Positions 13,122 through 58,072 are shown, numbered from the stretch's first letter. The stretch: DNA of 64,000 nucleotides from Hyphochytrium catenoides (GCA_900088475.1 FLMG01000265.1:186001-250000), one strand, 5' to 3'. Numbers and translations are program-made. Notes: generated from the sequence alone by a model not told the origin.

Positions 13122-16100
13122 TCACTGGAAACGCTCAAGCATTGGCTGGTCATGAGGACCCACAGGGGTAATGTTGAGGCTGAAGACGGAAGCCGAGCCT
13201 GGTGCCATAACTCCTCCTATGAGGTTATTCGTACCTCTGGTGCTGAAGGATGCATTGTCTAGCCCCGGCTGGGCGTTATCTAAGCCTACGGCAGTTCCGG
13301 CCTTGTTATTTTTGCGCCTGAGCTCTTCTGCAGCAAATTGGTCCTTTTGCATCCTCCGCTTCAAGAAAAGTTTGGCATAAAACTTGTCTCCTAAATAGGT
13401 CATCAAGAACGCGGTAGAACCAATAAACCTCCAAAGGTTGAAGAGACCAATCGCCACATAAAGAATGGTCAAGAAGCGATCCGGAGAGACGTAAATCTGC
13501 ACTGTGAAGGTGTATGTCAAGTTAGACACGAGCCAGAAGGTAAGGAGCCGTGTGCGGAAGAGATTGAAGGTCTTTTCTAGCTGTTCCTTCTCTGCTGCCG
13601 CCGCTTTCTTAACCTCCTCTGCTGCCTTTCTGGCTGCAACCATATCTTGATAGCTTCCAGTGCCCTCCTCTTTCTTCCTCTTTCTGTCTCCTCCTCCTCC
13701 TCCCTCTCCTTCTGCTCCAGCGTCGTCGAGTCCCTTGGTGCCCCAAGATAAGTCATGAAGGTTGCAGAAGGAGTAGGACATGAGGACGTTGATGGTAGTT
13801 GGCAGGAGAATAAAATATTGTACGATCGACATGACGATGTGATGAAGCTCGCAGTGGAAGCCCGCGGAGATAAAGTAGACTCCCAAAATGAGCGTGGCGA
13901 ACGAGATAGTGAAAGCGTTGAAATCTGAACCCAAAAAGAAGATCAGCGTGGCCACCACCACCGTGATCGCCATCAATATGCCGTAGTAGACAGCGGATAT
14001 CAGATATAGGTACGGGGTATGCTTCGGTTTACTGCCAAGACCCCAAATAACTTGAATGAGGAATAGCAATCCATACGTATACTGGACGAGGTTGGATACG
14101 AGAAGTCGGGTCTCGAGAGGTACCCTGTCAGTTTGTACAAAGCCATATTTGTTGTCCACGAAGCCTCTGAGGAGGACAAAGTATATCGTCAAGTAAAAGT
14201 TCGCCACAAGAAACCAGTTGAGCACCACGGTGATGACGTTGAAGAAGTATTGGGTGAGCAGGACCAGCTTTCTGAATATTGAGTGACTGCTCTGCGTATA
14301 GATCCGACCCCAGTAGAAGATAGTATAGAGAATAGCAAAGAAGGAGCCGTTCAGCCAGCGGCGCCGCTGGCCAATAAGCGCAACCAGGTTTGTCGGAACG
14401 TCGGTTCGAGCTATGGCATTCTTCACATAGTGTAGAGTCCAACGACAATTAGCCTTGGCCACGATCTCAAAGCAAAGGATACGGTCCTCTGCCAGATACA
14501 TGTTACCCTGGAAGGGTCCCAGCTCTTTCATCGGGATTGTTAGGGCCTTGAAATATGCTCGAAGCGGCTCCCCTCGGATGGCTTCGTATCGATAGGCAGA
14601 GAAGGCTCCAGGCAGCACACTGATGAAGCCGAACACACTCTCCATCGATTTATCAAGGACGTTGGAGATCTTGTACTCATAGTGCTGCGCAGCGATGACC
14701 CAGTTGCAGAGATTAGGAATGGGTCTGTCCACAGCAATTTCGCCGCAGACACCACCGATGCGTCTGTTTCCCTCCATGGCTACGAGCAGTCTATAGAATG
14801 CGGACTTTGTGGGCAGTGTCCCAACGTCAAGAAGCACTGTGTATTTGGGCATCACTTGCTCTGCAAAAGCGTTAAAGTACCACTCGTGGGAGTTCAGCTT
14901 GCCAGCATTGTACTCTTTGAGGGCAAAGACCAACTGTATAGGCAGGAACTGCTTCCCCGTCTCTTCTTCCGGCATGAGCTGTAGAGTGTACTCGAAAAGG
15001 TGCATTCTCACGTCTGTTCCTACTGAAGTAATCGTCATGGCCTCCTCGTCAAAAGCTCCGGCACCTCTCAGAAATTGCAAGGTCGATGGGTTTGCCTTGG
15101 TCTTGCCGTCTGAGACCACACATACCAGGACATTCTGCCACGCTTTGTCGTTGTCATAGCCTGGAAGTGCCATTCTCTGCAGATATGTAAGGTTATTCGA
15201 AACCTTCCGCAGCGTCTGTCGAAGCTCCGTATCGTCCTCGTTGTACATGGTAATGACCACCATCAGCTTTGGACGTCTATTATTCTGTATGCAGTTCAGT
15301 ACGTAACCATCCTGTGTGAAGTTGCTGGGCTTTCTCGTGGTAACCGCCGTATAGAAGAGAGTCGTAAACTCTTGGGGGTCTGTGGGGGCAAGAGGAGCGA
15401 TAATTCCTCCTTGCGCCACGCGCTCCAGCACCGGTACTGCCACAGTGCGTCCTAAGCGCTGCGGAACCGGACCTGGTTGGCCACAGTCAAGCCAGTTGGC
15501 CAGGGCCTCAGTCCATCCAAGTACATCCATCGCCTTCTGATGGAGTCTGCAGAAAATTGAGAAAGTAAGTCATAGCAGGAGAGAGTTTGCTTGGTATTTA
15601 AGTCATCGTGGAGTGCTGTTAGATAGAGACATTGAGAGAACTAAGAGTCTGCTGACATGGGCGAGTCGCATATAAGGAAGGAGTTGGCGGAAGAAAGCAC
15701 TACTACGACAAAAAAGAAGGGGAGTACAAAAAGGGCTAGCATAAGAACGTAGCCTTCATCTCTGAGAGAATAAGCAGCTTACAGGTTTCTGATGTGTTGG
15801 TCCTCCTCCTTGGCACCCACCCGGGTAAGCATTTCTCCAGCGTCAAGGAAGCTCTTCATGGCTAGGGCATACTTTCCTTCATCCTCAGCCGTCGCACCTT
15901 GAATAATAAGCCGAAAGGCCTCCTCTGTAGAGTCTGGGAGCTCGACTGTCATGAGTGCTCTCCTTCCGGGTCCTTCGGAGCCGTCGTTGAGAAGGATACT
16001 GACAGTTTGAGGGCCACCCAGCGCCGCAGCTGCCCGGTGAGGACTGGCGCCTCCATTGATGTAATAGCTGATAATGACGGTGACGACGACAAGCGGAAGA

Positions 16101-16251
16101 ATTTTATAGAGCAAGGTAGGCACACGAGCTTGTTAGACAGAATAAGTCAGAACATTGGGGAGAAAGAAAAACTCACGCCTCTATGCAGACTCGCTAGTAA
16201 CTTTGGATGGTACGTACTTTGCTGTTGTGGGGCCTCCATCTGGCCGCGCAT
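13122..16251 (-). CDS. CHS: Chitin synthase A (GT2) with N-terminal MIT domain; start codon uncertain (15952-16251)
   Basis: Motifs [54 protein letters not shown] and [12 protein letters not shown]-like helices EEAFRLIIQGATAEDEGKY...FLDAGEML are joined to LHQKAMDVLGW by intron 15782-15547. Confidence 0.93.
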
Positions 16252-19200
16252 CCTGGTGGCTCCACATCGTCCTTATGGCGTTGCAGTCTGTATATAGGGA
16301 TATATATCTATGATGACGGAGGTGATCGTTTACCAGGTGTGACCTCTTGATGAGAGCTTAGTATTGGGAAAGGAGACACCGCGTATTATACAGAGAGCGG
16401 CTGCGGATTTGAGCCAGGAAATAGCCAACAAAAAGAATTATCTTCTCGTCCCGTACAGAGGAGAAGGGCAGGAAGCAGCAAACGGATTAAAGGGAGCGAA
16501 GCTGTCGGCTCTGCAGCTGCCAGCATTGACAATATGCAGAGCACCAGCGCATTAACATATTAGAGAAAGATAAGAAACTCGATATAAGAAAGAGGGAATT
16601 GAGGCTCAAGCGGCGCAAGTTGATGAGCTTTGCCACAGCAATAGAGCTGTGACGATGCGATGAAGACATGCACTGTAATCGCTCTCAAGAGTACCACAAG
16701 CGTCACCACTGAATGCTTCTATACAGGGGAAGGGAAGGGACTCTTGAAGCACTCTTCTGGTTATTGTTATCAGCTAGGATGGCATCAGCTAGGATGGCTA
16801 TCTTCTAAGAACCGTGACATCCTTTCAGGACGACAAAGGGCTGAGAAGATGAGCGCTTCTTATTTATTACAAGGGCAGGAGTCTAGGTTCATGACGAAGC
16901 AGCATACTGGAGAGCCTAACCCCACTACGACAGCTGTTAAGGAGGTAGGACGTCATTGGGACGAGTGAGCCTTTTTAAGGCTTTCTGCCTCCTTGAGCCT
17001 ATCCTATCAATAAAGGCATATCGCATCATCAGAACCCAGTATGTACCACCTCAAAATTCTGATGGCCCCTGAGAAGAAGGAAGAGCAATGGGAAAAGGAT
17101 CTGGAGGGACACAAGGGGGAGTGCTTGGTGGTAAGTAATGGGAAGAGAAGAGGCGCAATCATATCTCTGGGTGTAGTTGTCCATCACCAATGTACTCTCA
17201 GAAGACTGAAGCCCTAGCTATAACTCTGTCTGAAAGGTTGTCGTCAGTCCAATCTCTTCTCATTCACCATCTGACTCTCATCTCTTCTCTTACTACGGCT
17301 CCTCAGCCCTCTTGCATCAGAAATGAGGATGAGCCCAGAAGTAGAATAGAGTACAGTAGTACAAGGGCAAAGTGCCATGAAGTTAGCTCTCATCATGTAA
17401 GCATGTAGAAGGACTTGACTGGTTCATGAGCCTAAATTTCTTCCTCTTCACTAGGAAAGAACTAGATATTTCTTTTCAACAGTTGTACTATCGTACATCT
17501 TGCTCATACACCGCCTCCTTGTTCTCCTCCTCAAAGGTAATATCACATGTCTCCTCACCTACTTCTGCTCATCTCCAAAAGTTCGCCTCACTTGGCCCCG
17601 GTCTATTTTTAGCTCTCCACCCCTGTGTTGTCCGTCTCTTTTCCACCCCGTGGTCATCACTTCTATTACTTAGGGAGGAGTCAGATCACTCCTCTTTACT
17701 TGATGGCAGCCTGCTGGCTGTCTGGCTCCGTCCTGACCTGGATGATGATAGACAGCCAAAGCACTTCCTATAGACCTATAGTCAGTCACTGATCATAGCG
17801 GTTGTGGAGTAGTTCATAGTAATAATTTGGCTGCTGTGACTGAGGAGGCGTAACGCCTCCTCCCCCCACCTTCTGTAAGCGTTACTGTGTGTGGAATGGA
17901 GATGATAACTGATCTGAAGATACATTGAAAGAGGGGACAAGGAGCCAGACCTCTAATTGATTGATGAAGGGAATCGCTGCTGCTGCTCATGGCATCTGCT
18001 TGCTGATGAGCTGCGGTCGGACTCTTCTCTTCTTCTTTTTTGCCATCTCCTTCCTTGCAAGCTCTTCTTTCTTCAGCCGTCGTACAGCTGCTCGTACAGC
18101 TGCTTGACATGCTTGCGGGTGCTACCTGGAAGGCTGGAAGCACCAACATTCTTGTTCACAGGACCTTTAAATTAATGCTTTGGCTGCTACCCCTAGCTGC
18201 GACGACGACGAGGAGTCATTTACACCCGTGCTATTAATCACCCCGCACCAGAATAGCGGCCATTACCTAGTGAATCTACCCCCAATAGAACATTATGTCT
18301 TCTATACCTCGGAGTACTACGACGATTGGCTGAGACCTAGTGGCGCGTTGGGAGAGACATAGGTGGCTATGTTGGGGCAGTCAGGGCGTTGTGGTGAATG
18401 CATTATTGTCTCTAGAAAGATACTGCACCGTTTGAGGGCTAGCACCAGTGAGGCTGTGCTAGTCGCCAAGGAAGAACTTAGAAGCTGAATGATTATAAAG
18501 CATGTATCGATTCAGACACCTCCTCCACAGAAGTCCAGTCCTCGCATGGTAAGATCGCTGCGCGTGCTTCACAGGAGCTAATGTCACATCGGAAAGTGAA
18601 GGTATTGAACAAACACGTTTTAAAAAGTCGCCTCCGTGCGGTTAAGCTTGTTGACGAAAGCACAGAGCAGGAGTTGCCGTGCGCTGAGCCTTGATTGTTA
18701 ATGTCCAAAGCAGACAGACACTACCATAGCAAAAGACCGCAGATGGAGCAGAAGAAGAAGGATTCTGCAGATGATAGATTCGAGGTGACACTAACGCAGG
18801 CCGCCGAGAAGGGAGATGGTGGTAAAGGAAAGGAGGAAATGTGGTGTGCTTGCGGCAAGTCGTGACTCATGGAGCTAGGACCATAAGAAGGAAGTCCAAA
18901 CTACCCTGTTCGTTTAGGCATGATGTTGTCCAATGTGTTATCTAGCAATCTAAGCGAACTGGCACAGATCTATGCTAAAATAGAAGCAACTAAGGAACTT
19001 TATCGTCTGCTAAGAACTTGTTTTGAAGCTAGTAGTACCCTAATGTTAGCCTACATGGGAGGGGGCATGTTCAGGGTTGTTGACCATCGCTTATGAAAAG
19101 CGATATCGTGCATCATTGTTTAATGACATGAGTCCAAATGATCTTACGATTCGCATGGTCATGCTAGTTTTAGGTCCGGGAGGAGTGTAGTTAACGCTAA

Positions 19201-19348
19201 GGCAACAAATTTTAAAGAGCATTGGTCTTTTGTTATTCTTAGAAAAGGCTTAGGAGGATAAACTTCATGTTGATCAGAGAGGCCACCAGAGGACATGGCA
19301 CAATAGGGGACTGAGCTGGATATCCGAAAGGGTCAAACTGGCTGCAGC

Positions 19349-22323
19349 TTAAACATACGTGTGACCCCGTGGTGGAGGGGCACGGTTTGATGGGCGACCA
19401 CCATTTTGGGCGGCAGCACCTTGGGGCGGACCCGGAGGTCGCATAGGAACCTGTACCCCTGGGTGTCCTCCAGGAGTGTTCATCGCGCTGTAGCCCATAG
19501 GTGGCGCACCTTGTGCGGCTTGTGCCCTCGCGGCCTGAGCCGCAGCCTCCTGCCGAGACCTCTCCTCATTACGTAACCGTCCCTTGAGGCACATAAAGCG
19601 GAAGATTGTATCAGCCGCGTACGTAACAAGATACATACATGATCCTATAAACCGCCAGATATTGAAAAGACCCACGATGACGTAGAGAACAGTAAGGTAT
19701 GATGTGGGGTCGTCGTTTAGCGCGATCTGCACCACTGCTGTGAAGAGAAAGTTTGATATCAGCCAAGCGAAGAGCAGGAAAGTACGGAACCCGCTGAACT
19801 GCTTCTCCACCTCCTCCTTCTCTTTAGCTGCTTGCCTCGCCCGCTCTTCAGCCGCCTTTTGTGCCGCCAGAACGTCTTCGTAGTTACCCTTTTTCTCATC
19901 CTTTGGAGGTCCATGGCCGCCAGAGCTCTCCAGCCCCTTGGTGCCCCACGAAAGATCATGAAGGTTGCAGAAGGAGTAGACCATAAGCACGTTGATGGTG
20001 GTTGGGAGGAGTGCAAAGTACTGAAAGAACGCCATACAGATGTGATGGAGCTCACAATGCGCNNNNNNNNNNNNNNNNNNNNNNNNNNNNNNNNNNNNNN
20101 NNNNNNNNTTCTTTGTGTCCGGTAGGTATTTACCCCAATTGTCGTTGAGGAGACCCGATATGACGTTGAAATAGATTGCCAGGTAGAAATTGGAGACCAA
20201 GAACCAACTGAGAACGACCGTGATAACGTTGAATCCGTACTGCACCATGAAGCTTGTCTTTCGCAAGACACTGTGGTTGCTTTCAGAAAGAATGCGACCC
20301 CAGTAGCGGATAGTGTAAAGGATAGCGAAGAACGATCCGTTCAGCCACCGACGACGCTGACCAATAAGTGCAACCAAGTCCTTAGGTACATCCGTGCGAG
20401 CAATTGCGTTCTTTACATAGTGCAGTGTCCAATTGCATCCTCTCCTTGCGACGATCTCAAAGCACAATATGCGATCTTCTGCAAGATACATATTGCCTTG
20501 GAAAGGCCCCAACTCTTTCATAGAGGTTGTAAGAGACTTGAAGTAAGCCTGAAGCGGTGGGCCCCTAATTGCCTCATATCTGTAAGCAGAGAAGGCACCA
20601 GGCAGTACGCTGATAAACCCAAACACACTCTCCATGGATTTATCCAAGATGTTGGAGACCTTGTATTCATAATGCTGCGCCGCAATGACCCAGTTGCACA
20701 GATTGGGAATGGGTCTGTCAACAGCAATCTCACCACAGACGCCACCAATTCGAGGGTTCGACTCCATCGCGCCGAGAAGGAGGTAAAAGGAGGTCTTCGT
20801 AGGCATTGTACCCACATCTAGAAGAACGGTGTACTTCGGCATGACTTGCTCTGCAAAGGCGTTGAAGTACCACTCGTGAGAGTTGAGCTTGCCGCCATTG
20901 TGCTCCTTGAGGGCGAAAACAAGCTGAAGAGGAGGATAAACCTCCCCTCTCTCTTCCACTACAACCTCTTCTCCATCTCTCTTCACCTTATGTGCCATCA
21001 TGCGTAGAGAGTACTCGAAGAGATGCATCTGCACATCCGTAGCAACAGAGTTGATGGTCATTGCCTTCTCGTCAAAACAACCAGCATCGGAAAGCCACTT
21101 CATTGTGCCAGGATTGGCCTTGGTACGCCCATCTGACACCACACAGACAAGAACATTCTGCCAGGCTTCATCNNNNNNNNNNNNNNNNNNNNNNNNNNNN
21201 NNNNNNNNNNNNNNNNNNNNNNNNNTCGTTCTCGTCCTCGTTGTACATGGTGATGACAACCATCAGTTTGGGCCTCCTTCCCCTTCTCATACATTGAAGA
21301 AGGTATCCATCCTCTGAGAACTTATCCACCTTCTTGGTGGAGCAAGCTGTGTAGTACATCACGCGGAACTCCTCAGAGTCTGAGCCTAGAGCTGGGGCCG
21401 CAGCCTTGCCCCTAATTCTGCCTATAAGATCGGTCGTCACTGTTCGCCCAAGTCTTCGAGGAGGAGGTCCCTGCTTTCCATTATCCATCCAATTTGCAAT
21501 CGCCTCACACCAGCCCATGACATCGAGCGCTTTCTGATGAATTCTGCCAACGAAATGGTTAGCAGAGCTTGGTGGAGCAAACTTAAGAGATCGAGAGCAG
21601 AGGGACAGTAGAGCCTATGTCTGATCAGATCACATGTTACAAACAGTAACATAGCACGCACGAATCAACAAAAACATGGACTAGTAAGAAAACGACAGCA
21701 GAGCACGTGACATGAAGAGTAATCACTCACAGGTTCCGCACATGAGGGTCACCCTCATCATCACCGACTCTGGTAAGCATTTCTGCTCCATCCAAGAAAG
21801 CCTTCATGGCCACGGGATATCTTCCTTCTTTCTCCGCATCCACACCCTGATTCAAGAGCCTAAAGGCTTCATCCAAAGAGTCGGGCACTTTGTTCATGTT
21901 GGTTAAGGACTTGGTTCTGTTTTTCATAAAGGTAGTGCGGGGTGATGGCGTCGCGTTGGGATCCATGTAAACTGAGGCACCACGGTTCTCTCCAAGGAGA
22001 TGCCTCCGGCTGGGCTCATCAACCCACACAGCTGGATCGACACCTGGGGTACCTCCAACTTGAGTTTGCCTTGCTACATCCGGGTTGACAACTGGTTGCG
22101 GACCGCCCCCCATCTGCCTGGGATTACCGCCATAACCGTGATATGCAGAGGGGTCCTGATGAAAGGTGTTGGGAACGTTACCTCTTGACGGATAGCCTGG
22201 GGTAGGATTGGGTTGGTAGCTGCCTGCTGCTTGATAGTTACTAGGCTGATAGCTCTCAATGCTATCAGCGCTCTCCCCCGTTCCGTAGAACTGGCGGGGA
22301 TTGCGTGGGGCACGTCCAGCCAT
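19349..22323 (-). CDS. CHS: Chitin synthase B with MIT domain and Pro/Gly/Gln/Tyr-rich termini (two assembly gaps inside)
   Basis: Exon 1 (22323-21731) ends in [22 protein letters not shown]...HVRNL. Intron 21730-21544 is followed by [11 protein letters not shown] and all GT2 CHS motifs, including EDR and QRRRW. N gaps lie at 21173-21225 and 20063-20108. Confidence 0.92.
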
Positions 22324-24501
22324 TTGACCTTGTCCCCTCAGCAGTTACACGCAGAAAGTGGCTGGGCAGCTTTGCTCCCTGTCACTTCGGGGACAACAGG
22401 AACTAGAGCCTAGTCCGGCCCGGACCTCAACGGGCTTGATGATCAAATGAAGAGTTCTGATCTGATGATGCGTGCGATTGCTCTTGGAAGAAGTGAGAAT
22501 GAGAAATTGACTTTCTGATGGTAGTGCCCACAGCTAAAGCACTGCTCTGCACGAAACTCCGGCAGGTTGGTAGCTTGTATGGCGAATTGGGGATGCGCAG
22601 AGGGCGACAGGAAGGGGAGGAAAATGGAAGCGTGAGAGACGTGAAAGAGTCCAATGGAAAGCTTGCGTGGAGCCGCGAGGGCTCAGGCAATTTTCAATAC
22701 GGAAGTGCAGAGGGAAAGTAGAAGGGGAGGATCTTTCCAGCGTATGAGAAGAGGCAGACTGACACAGGGACAGAGGAGGAAGAACAGAGGGCTCTTTTAC
22801 ACACTATGTGCTCGGCGGGTGGGAGGGGCAGATGAAAGCCATCTAGCCAGGTAGTAACTAGGCCCACCCATCCTGCCTGTGTGCACAAGGGGATTCCTGT
22901 CCTCTGTCCTCTCCGCAGTGTCTCTTCTTTATAGATCTCTGTGTACTCTGTCTCGTTGCCGTTGGTTCTGTCAGACCACTTTACCTAGGGAATTTGCCAA
23001 TGATAGGATGTCTCTCGCTGGCTCGCTTTGTGATTCGAGTTTGATTGTGCTAGTGATGGAAACTGTCTTGTATGAGGGTAGAGGTATCCCTTCAAAATAA
23101 GACGTCTTGGATACCTAATAAGTGGATTGTTCTGAGTTCTAATTACCGATACACAGCGCTAGCACACCATCACCCCTATCGCTATATTCGTCTGTCTCAG
23201 ATTATTGGACTGGCTCTTCCTGTTGTTCAAAAGACAGACTCAGACCATAAGCTTCGACATGGAAAAATAAGAGTCAGGACAAAGATGGGTTACTCTAAGT
23301 CAAGAAGTGGTAGGGAGACAGACAGAAGGAAGAGAGATAGAAGTGTTAGTAGTCCAGTCATACACCACAATGATCCATGACCAAAGTGAGGGAAAGGGAT
23401 TCAATGGCCACTTTGACCCCTGTCCTTCCTCCTCCTAGTCCATACATAGAACTACATAATCCCCAGTCCCTACATAAAGACATAGGTTTCCCATCCTATG
23501 GGCCTAGATATAACGTTAGCGGCTCCTGAAAGCAGGGCAGGGATCAAGTGGATCAATTCTCAACGTCTGACTGGCTAAAAGGAAATTTGGATCTCTGTTT
23601 TATAGGCAAAAGGACCGTAGATCGACAGGATCGGCGGTGCCTCAAAGCGGATGTGCAGCATGAAAAGGCTCAAGTTCTAGGTACAGCAATGTTGGAATCA
23701 GCAGTAGACTCGAGGATCATTAGAGCCTTGGATCATCTTCATAAAGTAAGATAGCTTCCTTCATAGGTGTGCAGAGAAGATAGAGCAGTTACAGATTGTG
23801 GGGCGGAAGAAGGAAGCCACGAACGGCTTTTCTATTACTCAGTCCTTTTCCTCATAAGAGTCCCTAGGTAAGAGAGGTATACGTATCGGTCGTACAAGGA
23901 TAGAGTCGCAGGTGAAGGCTGGCGGAGAAGACAGAGAATGACAATCAAACCATGAGGTAGCACCATAAAGCATATAAGGGACGACAGGGTCTGGAGGCAA
24001 CATAGCCGTCTGATTCATCCCATCATTAGCGACCAATTACCACTACTCCGCATGTCATTTGTTTGAGATGATCCTTACCTGCCTTCGACCGTGTCTGACG
24101 TTTCATAATAGGAGCCAAACATTTGTGATCTTCAACATTTGAGTTAAGACGAAGGGCGAGTGAGAGGCATGCTGTCTCAGGCAGCGATCCTGCCAGTTGT
24201 CTCGACAAGCGGTGCAGACAAGCGGTGCTGATTTAGTCAAAGATTTAGGTGCACCAGAGGGACTGCCTTTGATACCTAATCGCTATTCTAGTAGTCATTG
24301 TGCGCACAGCTATTCCTTTTCAAACACGTTGGTGAGGGAGGTCAGCTGCGCAATCTGATAACTCTCCGGCGATAGCCTCACCTCCCGCAGTTCCTTAAGG
24401 CTTCACGTGGCATCATTCTTAGAGGACATTGCAATCCCTAAGGCATTAGAAAGTATCGCTATCTGTCTCCAATTTGGCTGTGCCTTCGCTTCCTCCCCTG
24501 G

Positions 24502-24568
24502 CACCTTCTACACTGACCATCTGCTCTTCAAGCTCCATCTCCCACCTTCTACACTGACCATCTGCTCT
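24502..24568. repeat. Short direct repeat CACCTTCTACACTGACCATCTGCTCT x2
   Basis: Two identical 26-nt copies about 40 nt apart. Confidence 0.8.
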
Positions 24569-25737: not shown

Positions 25738-26040
25738 AGGATGCCGATGATTATCTAAGGCTGAATCGAGCTCAGAGAGTTTGAGCCAGACAAGGAAAGA
25801 AGAAACGCACTGCAAGTGCAGCTGGCTATCCCTACCTTTCTAGCTCCTGAATGCGTGATTATATGCGGTATGTTAGAGGGATTCTGAGGATTGACTAAGG
25901 CTGAACGGAGCTCACAGCTCGTGAGGCAGACAGAGACGAACGCAGTATTGACGACTACCTTTCCAGCTCTTCCTTTAATGCTTGATAATTCTAAAGGATG
26001 CCGAGAATTATTCCAGGCTGAACGGAGCCTCACAGCTCCC
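25738..26040 (+). repeat. Three diverged copies of a ~40-nt motif (GGAT.C.GA...ATT....AGGCTGAA.(C/G)GAGC.CA.AG)
   Basis: Copies at ~25738-25778, ~25878-25920 and ~25995-26040. Confidence 0.65.
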
Positions 26041-33700: not shown

Positions 33701-35106
33701 GGAGAAATGATTGGACTTTGTGCTTTATTAGACTCTGGTTGAAGGTTGTGTGCAACAGAAACCTACCAGAGTTGAAAGCTCCCTTCTATTATTGCGGTCT
33801 ATCAGCGATATTTACAAGCGCTCATCAACAGAACCAACACCTTCAAAACAAACTAAATAAACTAGGACCCTTCCTAGACAATCAGTCACTTCTTTCTGTA
33901 TTGTGAGCAGAGTGAATGACTAGGAAGGGGATTCACTGTGGATTGGTCAGTGTGTGAGTCGTCAGCAGCTGCGCGCGCCACTATTGGGTGGCAGGCATGG
34001 AGCTATAAGCCAGGCAGGAGGCAGGAGCCAAACCCTCCTGACTCCTGACTCTCTCTAATTCTATGGAGGCATGGAGCACACAGTTCGCCTAGAAACACAG
34101 CACAACCCTTTGGATCTGCTGCCTTTGGACGTCGTACTGGTACAGTTAGTAGTGAAGGTATCCGCGGTATTGATAGGGAGCGTTGCTTGCTTTTTATTGT
34201 ACTTGGCGAAAGGACAACCAATCCTGCCGCCTCTCTGGTCTGGCTTTTTCTTCTCGAGCGAATAAAATCTGCGAACGAAGAAGTGCATGTCCTCTGTCAT
34301 AATCTTTGAAGAAAGCGCTTCGCACTGACATCTTTATAAGGAAAGATTTTATAATGCCTAAAAAGAACTAGTTCTCAGGGTAGGCACGAGGTAACATCCC
34401 ATAATATGTATGTTCCGTGCCTAGCCCTAACAACGCGCCTTCAGCGCTCCCTGAAGGAGATCTGTGGATAGCTGCTGGGATGGGATAAATACACTACAAG
34501 TACTCGTATTACAGGCACGAGAGTAATGTGAGGAGTGATAATAATAAGCGCGTTTTTAGAGCTGCACCAGCCGAAGCAAGCACAGCAATAGCTCTATTGA
34601 GTGCTGTCAGTACATTTCGCTGGACATTATACTACGCATCCAACTCCATAGTGGCATTCAAAGGCTGCTTCCATCGACATTTACTATTTTCCAACCAGGA
34701 CAGGTTGGTTGCCAGCTCTATGTTTTCTAGAGCTTCAAGTTGAGTGGGTAAGAGGATAGGCTCTCTCGTACCTCAGTCTCCGCCATGAGTTGCCATGCCC
34801 CAAATGAGCTAGACTCTATGGCTTCTAATAAGCGCTAACATGTTGTTCCTTCCAAGCCGTGACGTGCGAAGAAATCGTGAACGAAGTGGCTAAGAAGAAT
34901 GACTATGTGCGCAATAAGACGAAGTATTTAATAAGTGGCCTATCTTCTCTACCTTCAAGAGCTATAATAATGCTCTGTAGCCTGTATGACTCCATCGATG
35001 CGCCCGAAAAAAGGAGCAGATTGCGTATAGACGGCTAAATATTACAGTCTAAATATTACAGTCTTATAATATAATGGGCGGATCTACCTACATCCAGGAG
35101 TTTCTG

Positions 35107-38100
35107 CTACATCTGCCACCATTTCTTCTTCGACTGCTGCAGGTTAAACTTCCGCATCTGCTCTGCGAACTGCTCCGCGGTGTCTTTCATCTGCTCTGTC
35201 TTCTCCAGCACATTTTGAATCTTCTCTCCGCGCTCTTGGACTCGCTGTGCAAGGTGAATGAGACAAGTGAACCACTAAGTAGAGCTCACGAGTCGGACTA
35301 GCTTATAAGGCCCGCTTTCTCCATGAGGCTCTTCTACTACGCGACGACCGCCTACCCCCTTTCTTTGAATTTACCTGCGTGATCTCCCCCATTGTATTGA
35401 TGATGTCACCAATGCCGCCTTGAATCTCTTTTTCGTCCCGATCGATAGCCTTTCTCTCTTGAGGTGCGGCAGCTCTCTCCCCAAAAAGCATATGCCGGTT
35501 GATGTCGTCGGCGGACGCGTTGAAGAGCTAGTAGGACAAGAGGTTAGGGAGGTAGAGGCCAATATTTAACCGAATGTACAGACAGAAGATGAAGGTGAGG
35601 ACTAAGTCCTTGACAGGTAGAGAGGGGACAGGATAAGAAGCTTGTGGCACACCGTGGCAAATAATGGCAGACATCAGGCACAACTCCAGCCTACCTCAAT
35701 CACTTCCTTTGCCGTAGCTGTGCTTTTGGAGGATTTCTTCAGGCTGTTTAGGATTGTTGACATCCCTCTTCCCCCTGCCGGGTTCTTTGGAGACTCTTTC
35801 CTAAAGGATGGCAACACATTGTTAGACGAGTGTCTCCTGCAAAAGTTGCAATGAGGCTAGACAGTGCAGTCGGGACGGTCTTCACAAATAATTCTAAATG
35901 CGAGGCAGCCATGACCAAGGTGTTCCCTATTACCGTTCCGTTCCTTCAGCCGTCGTCTGCTGAACGCTAAGCTGCTTCTTGGACTTCCAACCGTCAAGCA
36001 ACACCTGATAGAAGTCACCATACACTCTCTCATGCACAGAAGAGGCTAGTAGGGTAGCTCGCTTAATGGACTTATCAGCCCAATAAAAGAGCTCATGATT
36101 GGCAGCGGTGATAGTCTGGATGCTTATGTCACCCTCGACGGCTGAGTCCATAGAGCCGGACCACACCTCGCGCAAGTTAGGCAAGTCGAAGAGATTGATT
36201 CTCCCTGATTGCTCTACACACAGGACGCAATTGATCCGCCTAGATTCAAGCAATGGAGACGGGCGGAGATTGAGCAGGAAGACGTCAAGGTCAAGGCATC
36301 GACAGGCGGGAACATAGATGTTGGGTTCCATGCTTGTTGAAATGCAAATCTTCACAACTAGACGGCAGGGGCCATGGACAAAAGTATTGATAATGCACCT
36401 ACCGCCCCTCAATGCAGAGCTCTTGTAACGCCGAATAGATAATGGAGGATGATACTGTCGTCTGACAAACCGTGTCACAGCAGAGAACTTCCTCATTGTT
36501 CTCCCCTAATCGAAAGGGTAAGACACGAACGCTGATCACTCTGCCTGTAACCAACAAGAAGTACTGTGGTCTTTGCATCCGCTTTGGCAAATGAAGCCCT
36601 AGTGAAGCTGCACAGCATACGTTCAGCAGTAAGGACAGAGAAGTGTTAAATCTCCGACTATATCGCTAGGAAGGGACCAACCAAGAAGGAGGAACACCCA
36701 AGAGGAGCCATCGTCCCAACGAACAGATACGCGATACGGGCAGTCTGTTCGCCTCAGCTGGTGCTGGAAGCAAAGTAAACAGGACAAGTACGCGACGCGG
36801 CAAAGAAGGGAGAATTCCAAATTTTACAGGACAGCGATGGACAAATAACCCAGGAGCGACGGAAGCTAAGGAGGTGATACCTGGTAAGATGCCGCTACCG
36901 TCAGCAAAACGGACTTTTCGATTACTGCCTGAGCGAGAGGCCAGCCACGGGGTGACCTCAGCCGGACTTTTCTTGCTCACATCGTCTCCATCTAAGCCCA
37001 CTATAACATAGCCACGCCTCACCTCCCCGCTCTTCTGCAAGACACTTAAAGAGCCATCTGGAAGAGGATAGAAGGAATCTATGATGCATAGAGGGGCACC
37101 TGGGACAAGCCGGATGCCCAATGGACCAGCTGGGACTTCTATTTCGACCTGATGCGCCGAGGAGAAGTCAAGTAGTGGTAGGACCGAATCCATCGTTCCT
37201 TTGTCATGGCGTGCTTCAGAGAAATCAGCGTCCTGGAGCCAATCTTTGTCTTAGATTCTACCTAATAAGGACCTAAGTACCCTATAGCGCCGCATTGAGG
37301 ATAAGGAGAAGGGGTACTGCCTACTTTCTCCCGTCAGCCTCTTCTCTCAATCCGTTCGGCACAATTTGCCACCTAGGTGTTTTTTACCTCTAGTGATGGC
37401 CCTGGGCTACCGCGATCTTCTTCCTGAGCTCCTTGGCTCTCGAAATTGCTTTCCTTCTTCAACGTGGGAGACAGTGGTATTTTTTGATCCATGTTCGTCG
37501 GAAGGCATTGTACAAGTTTTCCTGATGGATCCAGAAGCGCACAGAGAACCCCTCGCGATTCAAAGAGCTCCTCCACCGGGCTAGAAGCGATTTTCTGTAG
37601 CAGAATGTTATCTCGTAGGTCATATAACTCTGTCACCCCAGCACTTTTGACAACCACCGCCACGGGGATTGAAGTGTCATCTCGCGGTTCTCCTTCCGAA
37701 CATTCAGGAAGTGAGAAAGAAGGAACAGAAGCAATAGTAAATCCAACCACAGGTGGAGGTGCATCAACCTCCAGGGACATCTCGAATAAAAGGAGTGAGG
37801 ATATCGATGTTGATAGGCAAAGAGAACTAACGATTCCTGCCGCATCAGCGGCCAAAGCGAGCTTATAATTCGGTAGCACGCCGATCTGGCGGATAGGCGA
37901 CTGGTGAGAATTGTTGACTGCTAGCAACTCGAAGCGATAGGTGCCTGTATAACATTTGGGACAATTGTAAGCACTCGTAAATAGAGTCTGACAGTGAAGA
38001 GAATCATCTCAAGACTTATTGGTATGGACTTGAGTTCCTACCTCCTAACCGAGCTCCGAACACCGCAATGCAACCATTCTCAAAACCCAGTGCCAAGGTG

Positions 38101-41100
38101 CCAGTGATAAGGCACATGGTAGCAGCCGAGAAGGTAGAAGGCCAGGTATAATCCTCATAGGCGCCGCCTTCCTTCGAGGTGGAGCTACTCAAAAGCAACT
38201 CAAGAACGTTAAAAGAGTAGAGAAGAGTAAGACTGGCTCCTCCTGGTACCGACGTAGAGGACGGATAGGTTATGGCAAGGGAGATTTTGCCCTCCTTCTG
38301 TCCCAGGAGAAGAAGGGTGAAGGAAAGGTGTTCCTCCTTACTCTCCCTAAGGAATTGGAGTAAATGCTGGGACTCCAATGTACTCGATAGGACCTGACAG
38401 GATGGACGGTCAGGCAAGTAGCCGGCCCTATGTGAGACAACCTCGCTGTGAAGTATATCTGAAATACTAAGTAGATAAGCACAAGCGCGAGACAGACTTT
38501 ACTATTACGGCAATGGGAGAATGGGGGACTTAGGAGCCTAGCTACTCTTTCTACCTGAGACGTCAAAGGTCCGCCTGACTGTTCAATACCTTCATCATAT
38601 AGCAGTCCAACAAGTGCACGTAGCTCATTTCCATTGACAGACTGGGCCTCGAGTACCACACCGTCAGAGCTACCAAAATCTACCTCACAGCGTCGGGGAG
38701 AAGGGAAAAGCTGAGGAGAAGAACTAGCCTCGCATTGAAGCATCCCTTCTATGGGATAGATGAAAAGGCCAGGATACTCTCCTTCCATTGGATTCCCTTG
38801 TAAACAAACAATATCTGTCGGGAGCTTATGCTCTGCCACAGTTCGAGTTCCCATTCGGCAAGAGCATAATAGGCCAAGTTTTTCCAAACGGTGAAAAGAA
38901 GCAGCAGAAAGGTTAGAGGAATAACCGTGTTGATACTATGGGCATCAGGGGCAATACGTAGAATTTGAGTGGTATAAGACACAGTGGAAAGAATGTCGAA
39001 TGGACGCAGAATGTAGCCTTAGGACGCAACAGGTGATGATGGGATGTCTAATGTGGAGCCTGTATCTTCTCCTGGCAACTTGCAAGAACCCAAAATACCT
39101 ACCTTCACTATAGGCAAGAGACAGAGCAAGGAGTCTGAGCTTGGAAAGCACTGGAAGGAAACATACAGGTTGAAATTGGCTGGGACTTAGAGCTCTGCTT
39201 GACAGTGACAAGTAGAAGGGATGGATTGTTACTCAGCAGGATGCGGCGTTTGCAGAACATAGTTATCGAGCAGCAGCAACCGTAGCATTAATGGACACAG
39301 CACTTCATCCACGGGTAAGTCTCACTTTTCGCCTTTCAGAAGAGCTCCCAGGCCCTTCTCCTTCTTGGGGCCTCCACCCATACAAGCAAGTATTGTGATC
39401 CCTGACGAACAGCCAGCCGCGTTTCCACCTGCAATGACCAGAATGCCTACGGTCCGACAAAGGCAGAGTGAGTTTAAGGTTACCAAGAAGCCCGAGAGCA
39501 CATACAGGTCAAAAAGCAATTGCAGAGCTGGAGGGTTACTTAAGTCAGGCAGCACTGCAATTCCGAAGCATATCTTGGACTTCCACTTCTTTTTTCTATC
39601 ATAGGGTGGCTGTTCTCACCTTCGTCGTCACCCTCCCCTTCGTCCTGAGCCTTATCTCGCTGTAGCCAGCATACCGACAGGATCGCTTCCCGAGGTGCGG
39701 TGGAGATTGCTCCATCCTCTAAAGGAAGCAGGCCCCGAACGCCAGTGGCTTTTTCAGTATGAAAGATAAAGAAGGAACCATCGTTGTAACCCGCTATGAT
39801 ATGCTCGGCAGTGGGACTCCAACTCAGGGTAACCAGAGCACGAACTACAAGGTTGAAATACCGATTAGTACAAGTGCAGGATAGACTCTGCTTTCCTTCT
39901 CTTTCGCACACCATGTAGACATACTCTGTGCAACCCTCTTGCTCCTTCCCTCTTTCCTTCCAATCTTCTCACCACAATGTCGTATTTCAGTCCCTCTTAC
40001 CCTGGCTCGAGCTCCCATCTGACGCTGAATAACTGCGCACCACTTCTCGCTTCTTTAGATCCCAAAGAAAGATTCCACCATATTCGTAGCCAAGAAGCAG
40101 CCTGCCGGTTGCGGTTGGATGGTCCGCCACATCTATAATGAAGTCCGGTTGGTTTGTAATCTGGCACACTTCTGGCAAACCAACATCACTTAGGGACACT
40201 CCATATGCGCTAATTTGGCAGGTGACAACATTTAGCATCTAGCGGCCACAGAGAGGACAAGCCAGGTGTGAGCAAGCAGATTTTCTTGTCGACAAGCTGT
40301 GCAAGCTTTGGCAGATGTCTACAAGTCTTCTTTCTCTTTGTGCAAGCTTTGGCAGAAGTCTACAAGTCTTCTTTCACTTTTTCGGCCGTCCTCCTCGTTC
40401 TCCCGTCTCCAAATGTCCTCCGTCGTCAAAGTCTATGCCTTCCTACCACTCTGCATCTTGATGTCCCCGCAGGAGACTTTCTACTCTCCTAAACAGATAC
40501 TTACCTGCAGAGTTCCATCGTCAAGGGCAATGAAGACGTAGGGCAGCAAACTGGATGCCTTCAGAGCGGTCACGCGACAAGTGGTCCATCTAGAAGGGAA
40601 GAAAGGACATGGAGTCAACAACAAAGATTGGCGAATAGAAGTGTGACGTGAGAGGTGGGCACAGTGGTGGCATTAGACATACCAAAGGGTAGCGAAAGAT
40701 GAGGGAGGCATGGGCAGAGGAGGATAAACGAGGCTGAAGAGCCCTCAGAACGAATGAAGGCCTACTGCCTCAAGTAGCAAGTTTAGTCTGCTCCTCTTGT
40801 CTCTGAGGCACCAATACTCTTACGTCGCGGGTAATAAGGCCTTCAAATACTCGTTAGACCCCTCGGCAGCTCTTCGTACATCCCAAATAGCCAAGCTTGA
40901 GTCCGCAGATACGCTGACAAGGTATTCATAGCCACTCACGAACGTCAGGAAGAGAATGCCTCCACCTGCGCTTCTCTGTCCTTCTCTTTCCCCTTTTAGC
41001 TCCAGCTCTAGACCATGCGGGCCGTAAAGTTTGATCTGCCCGAGAGCTGAGCCAACAGCTACGTGCGGACTATTCGTGGCGCAAGCAACAGCCTGACAGA

Positions 41101-41483
41101 TCCGTTTACAAAGGACTAAAGTTAGATTCTACAGAGGTCGGACAAGGAAAGAGGCTAAAACAAACAGAAGGCACTTAAAGAGGAAGGAAGGAACAGCGAA
41201 AGAATGGGACAGCTGAAGGGCAAAGGAGCATGAGAAGGAGGGAAGCTAAGGTATAGAGCGAGTGATGAAGATAGATACATCAGACCCAACACCGGCGGAG
41301 GTCTAAGACATTGATAGGATACGGAAGTGAGAGAGAGAGAGGATTGCTTGCCTTTGAGTTCAAGGGAATGCCGTGACTGCCACGATGCTTCAGTTCGAAA
41401 ATGTCCGAGGGATACTCCGCTGCGTGGTTAGTGGCAAGCTGCGAGCTGCCTCGAGCTCTGGACCCTGAGGCGTTATTCCCCAT
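35107..41483 (-). CDS. STXBP5: Tomosyn/Lgl-like protein: WD40 propellers, internal PDZ domain, C-terminal R-SNARE motif (intron-rich)
   Basis: N-terminus MGNNAS...HGIP, VAVGSALGQIKLYG, LLLGYEYGGIFLWDL, WSPTAEHIIAGYNDGS. PDZ-like segment at ~36905-37150. The last exon encodes RVQERGEKIQNVLEKTEQMKDTAEQFAEQMRKFNLQQSKKKWWQM-TAG (35107-35109). Confidence 0.85.
40298..40379. repeat. 41-bp tandem duplication inside a tomosyn intron
   Basis: TGTGCAAGCTTTGGCAGA(T/A)GTCTACAAGTCTTCTTTC(T/A)CTT x2. Confidence 0.85.
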
Positions 41484-41567
41484 CGGCTGAAGGGAAGGCA
41501 AGAAGCAGCAATGAGGGAAGAGACTGGAGGGACAGTTAGGTACAAAGCGCCTACCTCACGGGTCGTC

Positions 41568-42381
41568 CTATGGACCTTAAGAGACAGGAAAGAGGACTAG
41601 ATGATTTGGCTAGTCTCTAAACCTGACCACGACACCTGCGGCATTTACCAATCCACTGTCTCTTCAAGGCAGGAGCTTCCTCTTTGAGGCTCTTGTCTTC
41701 GATCCTTCGCTTCCTCTCTCCGCCGTGGTGTAGCGACAGAGGAGAGACTGCAAGAGTTGTGATCGGTTATACTATTTAGTGCCTTGGCGGAAAGATGAAG
41801 AGACAGCTACTCGAAGCAAGAGGAACGAGGGAATGAAGAGCTGGGAGCGATGGAGGAAGGGAGGTAGGATCGAGAACGAGGCATGAGAAAGAAAAGACAG
41901 AAATACAAAGACGAAGTGAATGGGAGAGAGAGAATTGAAAGAGAGAGAGGGAGAAATTAGGAAAAAGAGAGGAACGAGTGTCAAAAGAGGGCAAAAAGAG
42001 TTGCAGGAAAAAGAGAGAGAGAGAGAGAGAGAGGGACAGAGAGAGAGAGAGAGAAGAGAAAGAGAGAGAGACAGAGAGAGGTAGTAGAACTGTGATGCAG
42101 GTTTCCTGCTGATGAGTTATTAGCAGCAGTACCCTTTCGCCCAGAGGCTACTACTACTACGTAGGCTCTGCGTAAGGTACTTAGTCAATCCCGCGTTGGA
42201 CTGATATTATTACTGACCTGACCAGTCTGTGCTGCAGCCAAGCAGCCAAGCGCTCAGGGAGCGGAGAGCTCGGTCCGGACGCTGATGAGGAGGAGGACGA
42301 GGTGACAAGAAGGATGGTGGCGCAGGCCAGCAGGCAGGCAAAGAGGATAGCGGAAGTGTGAGAGGTGCGAGAAAGCGGCAT
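41568..42381 (-). CDS. Putative small spliced ORF (~100 aa, N-terminal hydrophobic helix) immediately upstream of the tomosyn ATG
   Basis: Exons 42381-42218, 42167-42133, 41747-41649 and 41575-41568 join in frame through GT-AG introns. The product begins MPLSRTSHTSAILFACLLACATILLVTSS and ends WIGP*. No homology recognised. Confidence 0.3.
42012..42080. repeat. (GA)n microsatellite, imperfect
   Basis: Directly visible GA run. Confidence 0.9.
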
Positions 42382-43216
42382 AGCAACATGAGAGATTGAG
42401 AGAAAGGCCAGGTGAATAGCAGAGAGATACGCACAGGAGATCATAGGAGGGCAATGTCGTTACCACCCCGAATATCTTGGCGTGGTGAGAGATGAGAAGA
42501 AATAACCGGACCGGGTGAGAACAAAAACGATGAAGGCGTGACAGGTCGAGATGATGAGGGTGATTCAGAGCTGAACAGGAGTTAGTGGCCTACCTTCTGA
42601 CAACAGAAAACACCTTGAGTGGGCATAGGCCTCTCTGATGATTACTATTCCTTTCATGGTGGTGCCTGGTCACTTGTCGTCTTAGGGCCGCGTTAGACAG
42701 TGTGTTGGTGCTTGGATGAGATGTATATACCATCGGACAAACCAGTAGGATTCTGAAGTCCGTCTACCGTGAGGAGGAAATGGTCACCGCTACACTGATT
42801 GGAAGTAGCCACTAGAATAGTGCTTATGTTCGCCTTCCTACATCGGCATCACCGCCTTAGCCAGAACGTAATCCGCTTCTATATAGATGGTTAGAGCATG
42901 CAAGAAAGGATGATTTGCCACGCTGCGATGATTTGCGCGAACAAGTTTACCGTCCTTGATACCTCGTGTTGCCGGTTAATAGACGTCGCTTGGACTTAGC
43001 TAGATATGAGATATCAGATAAAAGAATGAGAAGAAGCGAGGTATAGGAACCGCGACTTTGGTGCAGCAACCCTTTGAAAGAGAGAAGACAATAGGCCGCG
43101 CAGTTCTGCCCAGGCCAGGATAGTGATCGAGAAAGTGAAGATCGGGACAGAGAATATGAGATCAGGCCAGACAGTTGGATAGTCAAGCGCCACAGCTTAT
43201 ATATATTTAACACTAA

Positions 43217-43437
43217 TTAGACAGAGAAGGAAGTCCAGGTTACAGAGCACATGATGCTGTCGTTCTCTAGCTGTGGTCCGGAGCTGCGGTTCCTTGTATA
43301 GCGACGTCTTTTAAATCTGATAGCCTACTTAGACAGAGATGGAAGTCCAGGTTACATAGCGAGCGGTGCTGTCTTTTCACTAGCTATGGTTGGAGCTGCG
43401 GTTCCTTGGATAACGGTGTCTCAAAGATCTGATAGCC
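43217..43437. repeat. Diverged ~110-bp tandem duplication spanning the CHS-C C-terminus, stop codon and 3' UTR
   Basis: 43217-43325 versus 43329-43437; both read TTAGACAGAGA.GGAAGTCCAGGTTACA...GGAGCTGCGGTTCCTTG...ATCTGATAGCC. Confidence 0.85.
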
Positions 43438-46124
43438 ACCTGGAGGAGGGGCCCCTGGACCTCCCATTTGTCTGTGTGCCTGTACACTGGCGCGGTAGCG
43501 CATCTCCCGCTCTCTGATGTCTTCCTTCCGTAGCCTGCGCCGCAGGAAGAGCATAGCATAGAGCTTATCGCCCAAATAGGTTACCAGGTAGGCAGCGGAG
43601 CCAATAAGGCGCCAGACGTTAAAGGCACCAATAACGACGTAAAGGACCGTCAGGTAGCTATTGGCATCAACATAGAGCTGCACGCCGAAGACAAAGGCCA
43701 TGTTGGAGAGAAGCCAGAGGAAAAGAAGCTTCAGTCGAAAGCCGTTAAACTGCTTCTCTAGCATGTCCTTCTCCGCAGCCTCCTTCCTTGCCTTTTCTTC
43801 TGCTGCCTTCTGAGCAGCCACAACGTCCTCATAAGTACCTTTCTTGTCCCCAGCTTTCGGACCATGCCCTCCACCACTTTCTAGACCCTTCGTACCCCAC
43901 GAGAGGTCGTGAAGGTTGCAGAAAGAGTACACGTTGAGAATGTTGATCATCGTGGGCAACATGGCGAAGTACTGGAGGATCGTCATGAAGATGTGGTGAA
44001 CCTCACAATGTAGTGCGGCAGCTATAAAGTACACGCCCACAATCGCGATGGCGAAGACGATAGTAAAGGTTGAAAATGTGTCCTGAAAAATGAATATCAA
44101 AGTTGCGACCACGAAAGCCACCGCCATCACTAGGCCAAAGTACGCCGCAGCCACCGTGTATATCCAGGGGATGTGCTTAGGCTTGTTTCCAAGCCCGGCC
44201 AAGATCTGGAGAAGGAAGATCACGGCGTATGAGAACTGGAAGAGATTGGAAATCAGGTCTTTCCATTTGGTAGGAAACTCATCCACCTTCATAAACTCTG
44301 GGTAGCTGTTGTTATACATCGCGCGAATGACCACGAAGTAGATCGCCAGGTAAAAGTTACCCACCAAGAGCCAGTTCAGTAGCACAGTGATGCAGTTGTA
44401 GGTGTACTGAACCATGAAGGCCGCCTTCCGGAAGTAGCTGTGCCCACTCTCAGAGTAGATTCGTCCCCAAAAGGCCACAGTGTACAGGATAGCAAAGAAA
44501 GAGCCATTCAGCCATCGGCGTCGCTGGCCAATGAGAGCCACTAGATTAGTAGGTACATCCGTTCGTGCTATAGCATTCTTCACATAGTGTAGGGTCCACT
44601 TGCAGTTTGCCTTTGCCACGATCTCAAAACAGAGAATACGATCCTCTGCCAGGTACATGTTACCTTGGAAGGGTCCCAACTCTTTCATTGACGTGGTCAA
44701 TGACTTGAAGTACGCCCGAAGCGGCTCTCCCCTAATGGCTTCGTATCTATAGGCAGAGAAGGCTCCTGGCAAGACACTGATGAAGCCGAAGACGCTTTCC
44801 ATAGACTTATCCAGAATGTTAGAGACCTTATATTCATAGTGCTGCGCGGCGATCACGAAGTTGCATAAGTTGGGGATGGGCCTGTCGACTGCAATTTCAC
44901 CGCACACGCCTCCAATCTTAGGGTTCCCCTCCATAGCCGCTAGCAACCTGTAGAAGGCTGATTTAGTCGGCATCGTGCCCACATCCAGAAGGATTGTATA
45001 CTTCGGCATCACTTGCTCCGCAAAAGCGTTAAAGTACCACTCATGGGAATTCAGCTTGCCTCCATTATACTCCTTAAGAGCAAACACGACTTGTAGGGGA
45101 GGGTAGCGCTCATTTTTCTCCTCTATCCTCACCCCACCGCCAACGCCTCTGGAAACCTTATGATGCAACAGCTGCATGCTGTACTCAAACAGGTGCATTT
45201 GAACATCGGTGCCGACTGAGTTAATGGTCATGGCCTCCTCGTCAAAAGCACCAGTCTTGTTGAGCCATGATAATGTGCCTTTGTTTGCCTTGGTCCTGCC
45301 GTCGGACACGATACAGACCAAGACGTTCTGCCACGCATTATCGTCCTGGTAACCAGGGAGCTTCATCTGCTGAATATACTGGACATTGTTCGCAACCTTA
45401 CGAAGCGTGAACGCCAGTTCATTTTCATCCTCATTGTACATTGTAATAACCACCATAAGCTTTGGTCTGCGTCCATATTGAATCGTTTTCAACACGTAAC
45501 CATCACGGGTGAAGTCATCCACTCTTTTTGTAGAGACTGCTGTGTAGTACATTGTCCTAAACTCCAAAGTATCCGTCGGCAGAACCGGGGCATGCACCGA
45601 AGGTGAGAGACGATGGATGACATCGGCGGCGACGCAGCGGCCCATTCTCCGCGGCACTGGGCCCATTCGGCCATTATCTGTCCAGTTGGCAAGGGCTTCA
45701 GTCCATCCTAGTACGTCCATTGCCTTTTGATGGAGTCTGCAGGGGGAAGGACATGAGATTCTGCACACTAGGAAACAACTAAACAATGGGACGAAGACAC
45801 CTACAGGTTTCTGACATGCTGATCTGGTTCCTGCTCTCCTACTCGAGTAAGCATTTCCCCTGCGTCAAGGAAGTGGCGCATCGCCGCTGCAAAACGACGG
45901 TCTTCCTCTGCTTCTACACCGGCATTAATAAGACGAAAAGCCTCCTCAGTAGAGTCGGGGGTGTCAGGAAGGACCATGGACTGTGTCTTCATTGCAAAAG
46001 AAGAGATATTCTCTGAGAATTCTTGGTGTCCTGGAGGGAACTGTCTGCCGTACAAACTCCTTTGCTGCGAATTAGGGCTGCCGGCCTCTTGCCAGCTAGC
46101 CTGGTGCTCCGGAGGATTGTACAT
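43384..46124 (-). CDS. CHS: Chitin synthase C with N-terminal MIT domain
   Basis: Exon 1 (46124-45805) carries EEAFRLINAGVEAEEDRRF...HVRNL. A 68-nt intron (45804-45737) precedes exon 2, which has complete CHS motifs (TMYNED, EDR, QRRRW, SWGTKG). Confidence 0.95.
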
Positions 46125-57959: not shown

Positions 57960-58031
57960 ACAGAGGGAAGAGAAGAGAGAGAACAAGAGAGAAAGAGAGA
58001 GAGAGAGAGAGAAAGAGAAGAGAGAGAGAAA

Positions 58032-58072
<41 letters not shown>
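57960..58072. repeat. (GA)n-rich purine microsatellite
   Basis: Directly visible; it generates several spurious low-complexity ORFs. Confidence 0.9.

Follow-up and report, generated by a model that had tools for sequence, protein, structure and literature searches.

A proximal array of three MIT-domain division-1 chitin synthase genes in Hyphochytrium catenoides

Chitin synthase genes and their structure

A stretch of 64,000 nucleotides (nt) of the 61.0 Mb genome of Hyphochytrium catenoides (GCA_900088475.1, FLMG01000265.1:186001-250000; hereafter “the window”, in whose coordinates all positions are given) carried three division-1 chitin synthase genes within 33 kb, all on the minus strand: CHS-A (13122-15952), CHS-B (19349-22323) and CHS-C (43384-46124). 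Two further minus-strand genes, a full-size ABCG transporter and a multi-exon WD40 gene with tomosyn-like architecture, were located between CHS-B and CHS-C (Table 1). A description made beforehand from the sequence alone (the original prediction) had seen at this locus three minus-strand family 2 glycosyltransferases (GT2) with EDR and QRRRW motifs and an N-terminal MIT domain, and it was confirmed for the three genes by Pfam scores, by the motifs and by matches to the MIT structure 2MPK.

The Pfam family Chitin_synth_1 (PF01644) was matched above its cut-off of 25 bits in each gene (Table 1), and Chitin_synth_2 was also matched by Pfam in all three minus-strand open frames (13122-15530, 20109-21172 and 43384-45786). 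The motifs TMYNE, LDVGT, QxxEY, LAEDR, QRRRW and SWGTKG were intact in the three synthases, and the main exon of CHS-C was aligned with Phytophthora sojae Chs1 (PsChs1, 7WJM) over residues 145-848. The transmembrane part of CHS-B lies within the 262-letter fill of one of the two assembly gaps described below. Exon lengths added up to 864 codons in CHS-A, 890 codons in CHS-C and, including the gap fills, 1008 codons in CHS-B. All three genes would thus encode division-1 GT2 chitin synthases of the full-length, PsChs1-like layout, with a predicted chitin-making activity.

The first exon of each synthase matched the MIT domain of Saprolegnia monoica CHS1 (SmCHS1; PDB 2MPK, residues 3/4-52; E values in Table 1), and all three genes were collinear with full-length SmCHS1: exon 1 up to residue 152 and the main exon from residue 153, with helix 3 of the domain in the main exon. 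The MIT domain is therefore cut by an intron, of phase 2 and GT..AG type, at the identical codon in CHS-A, CHS-B and CHS-C. Scored alone, the exon-1 pieces reached 13-18 bits against Pfam MIT (PF04212; gathering score 30), covering profile positions 1-47 of 66; the whole domain of relatives scored 26.8 bits in P0001, an unspliced sequence introduced below, and 34.6 bits in SmCHS1. The MIT domain binds phosphatidic acid (PMC8851075), and the dimer interface of PsChs1 includes the MIT and SP subdomains (PMC9556331); SmCHS1 and PsChs1 are the only enzymes for which such MIT functions are known. MIT domains in chitin synthases have been stated to be exclusive to oomycetes (PMC6923183, PMC9556331), as has the SP subdomain (PMC9556331).

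Table 1. Features of the chitin synthase locus, with window positions and the evidence for each.
Feature	Position	Strand	Evidence
CHS-A main exon: MIT helix 3, catalytic (GT2) domain, transmembrane region, stop	13122..15546	-	Pfam Chitin_synth_1 159 bits, motifs, acceptor placed
CHS-A intron, 236 nt, GT..AG, phase 2, inside MIT domain	15547..15782	-	Junction ..IRNL|LHQKAM, collinear with SmCHS1 residues 152/153
CHS-A exon 1: MIT helices 1-2	15783..15952	-	2MPK E 5.6e-8; in-frame ATG at 15952
CHS-B main exon, broken by two assembly gaps	19349..21543	-	Pfam Chitin_synth_1 131 bits, motifs, acceptor site
Gap in CHS-B, written 46 N, true length 262 letters	20063..20108		Bridged by contigs from runs X1 and X2
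Gap in CHS-B, written 53 N, true length 76 letters	21173..21225		Bridged by contigs from runs X1 and X2
CHS-B intron, 187 nt, GT..AG, phase 2, position as in CHS-A	21544..21730	-	Splice sites read
CHS-B exon 1: long Pro/Gly/Gln-rich N-terminal tail, then MIT helices 1-2	21731..22323	-	2MPK E 1.6e-8; Pfam MIT E 0.0024
ABCG transporter, full-size, PDR-type, intronless, 1449 aa	26399..30748	-	ABC_tran x2, ABC2_membrane x2, PDR_CDR
WD40 gene, multi-exon, ending in R-SNARE motif, tomosyn-like architecture	about 35110..41555 (limits approximate)	-	Exon domain matches
CHS-C main exon	43384..45736	-	Pfam Chitin_synth_1 165 bits; PsChs1 7WJM E 8.6e-209
CHS-C intron, 68 nt, GT..AG, phase 2, same position as other two	45737..45804	-	Sequence read; acceptor picked by homology to CHS-A/CHS-B
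CHS-C exon 1: ATG at 46124, MIT helices 1-2	45805..46124	-	2MPK E 7e-9

Assembly gaps and divergence of the copies

The N runs of the region were both located inside CHS-B; the intervals 3245-20062 and 21226-59079 were free of N. Bridging contigs were independently assembled from two runs (X1 and X2), with even depth over the 6 kb covered. Together with 2 leftover coding bases in each case, the longer fill gave 264 nt, or 88 codons, corresponding to CHS-C residues 530-617, and the shorter one 78 nt, or 26 codons, corresponding to CHS-C residues 149-174; both segments were lacking in the CHS-B alignment. With the true gap lengths, the apparent frame shift of CHS-B vanishes, which leaves the gene collinear with CHS-A and CHS-C.

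Protein identity was 66% between CHS-A and CHS-C and, for the core, 76% between CHS-A and CHS-B and 79% between CHS-B and CHS-C. DNA identity among the copies amounted to 67-73% and was restricted to coding sequence: introns, tails and flanks did not align. Synonymous substitutions (dS) were saturated between the copies, and non-synonymous substitutions (dN) were 0.16-0.26. Such protein identities, the coding-only DNA likeness and the saturated synonymous sites point to old paralogs and not to haplotigs; by these sequence measures, CHS-A, CHS-B and CHS-C are old duplicates under purifying selection.

Phylogeny of the trio

Two trees were built, one of 59 rows and a careful one of 22 rows. In both, the three window synthases and P0001 formed one clade (100/100), apart from every sampled oomycete synthase, and this clade was placed inside the CHS1-like group of oomycete enzymes; its sister among the oomycete clades had no resolved placement in the 22-row tree. 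P0001 (895 aa), the sole outside member of the clade among the sequences sampled, was encoded by an intron-free 2.8 kb Logan contig (SRR33633051_50240) and was 79% identical to the CHS-B core. Within the clade, CHS-A and CHS-C were sisters (99/98), and CHS-B was grouped weakly with P0001 (84/72).

Against the oomycete clades sampled, the trio was monophyletic (100/100); it lay entirely on the minus strand and had a common phase-2 intron site, as in a proximal paralog array. The order of the genes (A, B, C) was at odds with the tree ((A,C),B), which indicates a history of more than plain serial tandem duplication. A lineage-specific expansion, one of the claims of the original prediction, is supported by the clade free of oomycete synthases and by the copies not being haplotypes.

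Chitin synthases in the rest of the genome

A genome-wide search with PF01644 matched, besides the window, contigs C428, C942, C1808, C1520, C293 and C3507. The last two had 91% DNA identity and were probably alleles; C1808 encoded a CHS2-like enzyme and C1520 one of non-oomycete type. Both C942 and C428 had an MIT-type exon upstream of the synthase, split by an extra intron in C428, and their single-exon fragments grouped weakly with the window trio. The genome-wide count that the original prediction had proposed thus gave at least 8 division-1 loci, at least 5 of them of MIT type. The same prediction had credited oomycetes with only one or two chitin synthase genes; this is true for Peronosporales only, and not for Saprolegniales, in which six genes fall into six clades (PMC6923183). 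No list of chitin synthases was found in the supplements of the genome paper, which had already described H. catenoides as a chitin-walled stramenopile with oomycete-like division-1 synthases (PMC5795050).

Chitin_synth_2 (PF03142) was matched without Chitin_synth_1 at three more loci (C2762:23967-24749, C4034:12591-13493 and C2875:4177-5058). These loci deserve classification because division-II chitin synthases were reported to be absent from these organisms (PMC5795050).

Genes among and around the synthases

The exporter of the PDR type expected between the synthases was found there in full on the minus strand, with two matches to ABC2_membrane (256 bits), a PDR_CDR score of 27.8 bits (cut-off 20.5) and the reverse topology (nucleotide-binding domain followed by transmembrane domain) present twice. 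About 14 ABCG loci, this one included, were counted in the genome.

For the WD40 gene, propeller-like exons were recognised at 40823-41128, 39990-40238 and 39543-39968, followed by an exon with a sub-threshold match to Lgl_C (35933-36505, 13.9 bits, cut-off 20). The last exon (35110-35274) matched Synaptobrevin/R-SNARE at 27.5 bits (cut-off 26.4), as well as VAMP8 (E 0.014) and the tomosyn SNARE 1URQ (E 0.42), and the protein ended in ..KKKWWQM before the stop. Neither LLGL nor Lgl_C was found genome-wide by exon-wise search. PDB searches with three exons, two Atlas look-ups and an additional Pfam scan, covering eight exons, yielded nothing beyond generic signals of propellers or R-SNAREs, with no tomosyn/Lgl match in the PDB searches, and the sole match of the Lgl_C-like exon in a large-library search was a repeat in probable intron sequence. 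The predicted exon chain is probably that of a gene tomosyn-like in architecture only. Of the tomosyn-like regulator originally proposed, the architecture (WD40 exons and R-SNARE end) and the strand were thus retained, and the family assignment was not, with Lgl_C below its cut-off and LLGL not found.

No convincing open frames were found on either strand in the 2-4 kb spacers between the five genes, from which genes with small exons could escape. Long microsatellite tracts of CT/AG type, read as SLSLSL in translation, were located at 41775-42147, between the tomosyn-like gene and CHS-C, and at 57594-58226. A multi-exon gene for a SacI-homology phosphoinositide phosphatase (8834-11527, minus strand; Syja_N E 7.8e-20) was located directly downstream of CHS-A. 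The region was flanked by two ordinary-looking minus-strand genes, encoding a DUF1232 protein (7530-8123) and a ZIP-family metal transporter (61549-63093). An unbroken open frame of 1343 codons with an acidic N-terminus and without a Pfam family was present on the plus strand (53259-57287), in a stretch with a strong AT skew (0.25).

Upstream regions and conservation of the neighbourhood

Six synthase loci of relatives were compared with the window: two Saprolegniales orthologue loci, S. diclina SDRG_08436, a 67 kb metagenome scaffold and two contigs of SRR27418475, a set that includes no second hyphochytrid genome. An ABCG gene, a tomosyn-like gene or a second synthase was present within 10 kb in none of the six. 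The two Saprolegniales orthologue loci had other neighbours in common (a PNPase-like gene and a MaoC dehydratase), and a search of metagenomes for closer relatives yielded no more than five contigs, all of them short and distant.

Against a crude mononucleotide shuffle, no convincing common promoter motif was found in the upstream kilobases of the synthases (16124-17123, 22324-23323 and 46125-47124). One 9-mer, AAGAGCAAT, was present upstream of the three (at -966, -162 and -222, respectively); neither the ABCG nor the tomosyn-like gene had it upstream. Its positions were scattered and control regions shared as many 8-mers; AAGAGCAAT was treated as noise, its sharing being probably due to chance.

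Runs X4 and X5 (organism B, 2024) contained 21% and 11%, respectively, of the sampled words of CHS-C; on the CHS-B stretch, X4 had none and X6 had 33 bases. X4 and X5 may represent RNA in which only CHS-C was assembled, or a relative sharing part of CHS-C.

Discussion

The locus is best explained as a proximal array of three intact MIT-domain division-1 chitin synthase paralogs produced by old duplications in the hyphochytrid line, with the ABCG and tomosyn-like genes as chance neighbours, a reading to which a probability of about 85% was assigned. Two other accounts of the copies themselves were weighed against it. An assembly artefact, in which the copies would be haplotypes, or one or two genes collapsed or duplicated during scaffolding, might be suspected in a heterozygous diploid known from a short-read assembly with about 2.75% single-nucleotide polymorphisms (PMC5795050); the middle gene has two N gaps, and another synthase pair of the genome (C293/C3507) is probably allelic. 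Against it, the window copies have a DNA identity of only 67-73%, limited to coding sequence, long N-free intervals extend on both sides of the gaps, and the gaps were bridged in frame and at even depth by contigs of two runs. Haplotigs and mis-assembly, the threat to the expansion that the original prediction had named, were ruled out by the identity between the paralogs, the gap bridging and the flanks without similarity, and an artefact of this kind is considered extremely improbable. Scarcely more probable is that CHS-A, CHS-B and CHS-C are ancient paralogs, orthologous to different oomycete clades and kept adjacent since the ancestor of oomycetes and hyphochytrids. The six old clades of Saprolegniales (PMC6923183), the saturated dS between the copies and the lack of a settled place for the hyphochytrid clade among CHS1-like enzymes are in line with such an origin; the monophyly of the trio against all sampled oomycete clades (100/100) and a mutual identity of 66-79%, higher than with any oomycete enzyme (at most 57%), argue against it.

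The original prediction also proposed a co-regulated wall- or cyst-building neighbourhood, in which synthases, tomosyn-like regulator and ABCG exporter would be switched on together for synthesis, vesicle delivery and export. Five recognised genes on one strand within 33 kb, the SacI-domain phosphatase gene just downstream on the same strand, and polarised exocytosis, the known route by which chitin synthases reach the membrane, are compatible with this proposal. However, neither the linkage nor the synteny with ABCG or tomosyn genes that it had proposed to look for was kept in the six loci of relatives, those of Saprolegniales having the PNPase and MaoC neighbours instead; the upstream regions had no convincing common motif, and the sole common 9-mer was missing upstream of the two intervening genes. 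The identity of the tomosyn-like gene is one of architecture only, and a story fitted to whichever genes happen to lie between the synthases is post hoc. The proposal is thus not supported and is regarded as unlikely, the ABCG and tomosyn-like genes being most likely chance neighbours.

Several observations weigh against the array of three intact, independently neighboured paralogs. The start codon of CHS-A was assigned to the ATG at 15952 by inference; a stop codon inside the CHS-B gap fills is possible, the fills being known by length only; and one or more of the three genes could be silent, as two of the six synthase genes of S. parasitica were undetectable in mycelium (PMC6923183). If P0001 came from the same species, a fourth copy missing from the assembly would have to exist. 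Finally, the co-orientation of the five genes and their spacers of 2-4 kb would also fit control through shared chromatin.

If the three genes are active, each synthase would take uridine diphosphate N-acetylglucosamine (UDP-GlcNAc) at a cytosolic GT-A site formed around EDR and QRRRW, as Phytophthora sojae Chs1 does, and would elongate a beta-1,4-GlcNAc chain that is exported across the membrane through a channel of the synthase itself; by homology with PsChs1, the enzymes probably work as dimers (PMC9556331). The N-terminal three-helix MIT bundle probably touches membrane rich in phosphatidic acid (PMC8851075), the other protomer of the dimer, or both. The duplications would have separated CHS-B from the ancestor of CHS-A and CHS-C first, and CHS-A from CHS-C afterwards, within the hyphochytrid line; all copies would have retained the ancestral phase-2 MIT intron and remained under purifying selection, while no similarity was left in their tails, introns and flanks. 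Subfunctionalisation is suggested by the retention of three old copies, all intact and each with a tail and promoter unrelated to the others; the enzymes may serve different stages or sites of wall deposition.

MIT synthases at this locus and MIT exons at two further loci of the sister lineage indicate that the fusion predates the split between oomycetes and hyphochytrids. A more ambitious scenario adds to this early fusion at least 5 MIT isoforms, three of them adjacent, which would associate through the dimer interface of the MIT domain and N-terminus into various homo- and heterodimers for the cyst, thallus and sporangium walls, with the 33 kb, tomosyn-like and ABCG genes included, being activated as one chromatin block; taken as a whole, it is unlikely, slightly more so than the co-regulated neighbourhood.

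In most respects the locus is an ordinary lineage-specific proximal array, its enzymes are of a known type, and chitin walls had already been described in the organism; the genome paper reported only oomycete-like division-1 synthases and a chitin wall (PMC5795050). What is modestly new is that the MIT-synthase fusion, oomycete-only in the literature, also occurs in the sister lineage, and in several copies; this expansion would be independent of, and parallel to, the six clades of Saprolegniales. The understanding of the mechanism is unchanged by the locus, which may be useful for tracing the evolution of fungus-like walls and for the choice of isoforms in inhibitor or structural work.

Comparison with known systems

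Like Tomosyn, Lgl and Sro7, the tomosyn-like gene has exons for a WD40 propeller and, at the very C-terminus of the protein, an R-SNARE-like coiled coil; it differs from them in its sub-threshold Lgl_C, in the missing LLGL and in having no family match in PDB or large-library searches. Like tandem or proximal arrays of wall synthases, the window contains same-strand paralogs clustered far beyond chance expectation (3 of at least 8 loci in 33 kb of 61 Mb); unlike typical arrays, its copies are old, have unrelated genes among them and are arranged in an order that does not follow the tree.

Among individual enzymes, S. monoica CHS1 (2MPK) and the Saprolegniales clade of SDRG_09152 and Aphanomyces LEN26_010192 are likewise division-1 GT2 synthases with an N-terminal MIT domain and have all the motifs in common with the window genes. 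That clade gave the best outside protein matches (53-57% identity over about 90% of the main exon; E 1e-8 for MIT helices 1-2). The window genes differ from that clade in forming one of their own, in having the MIT domain interrupted by a phase-2 intron and in being three neighbours; each of the Saprolegniales genes examined is the only synthase at its locus. PsChs1, characterized by cryo-electron microscopy (7WJM, 7WJN and 7WJO), is the closest solved full-length enzyme. It belongs to the Peronosporalean clade and has about 45% identity to the window synthases, whose MIT domain occurs in a hyphochytrid; the arrangement of MIT domain, glycosyltransferase domain and transmembrane channel is common to both, and from this shared layout the same mechanism of directional synthesis is expected.

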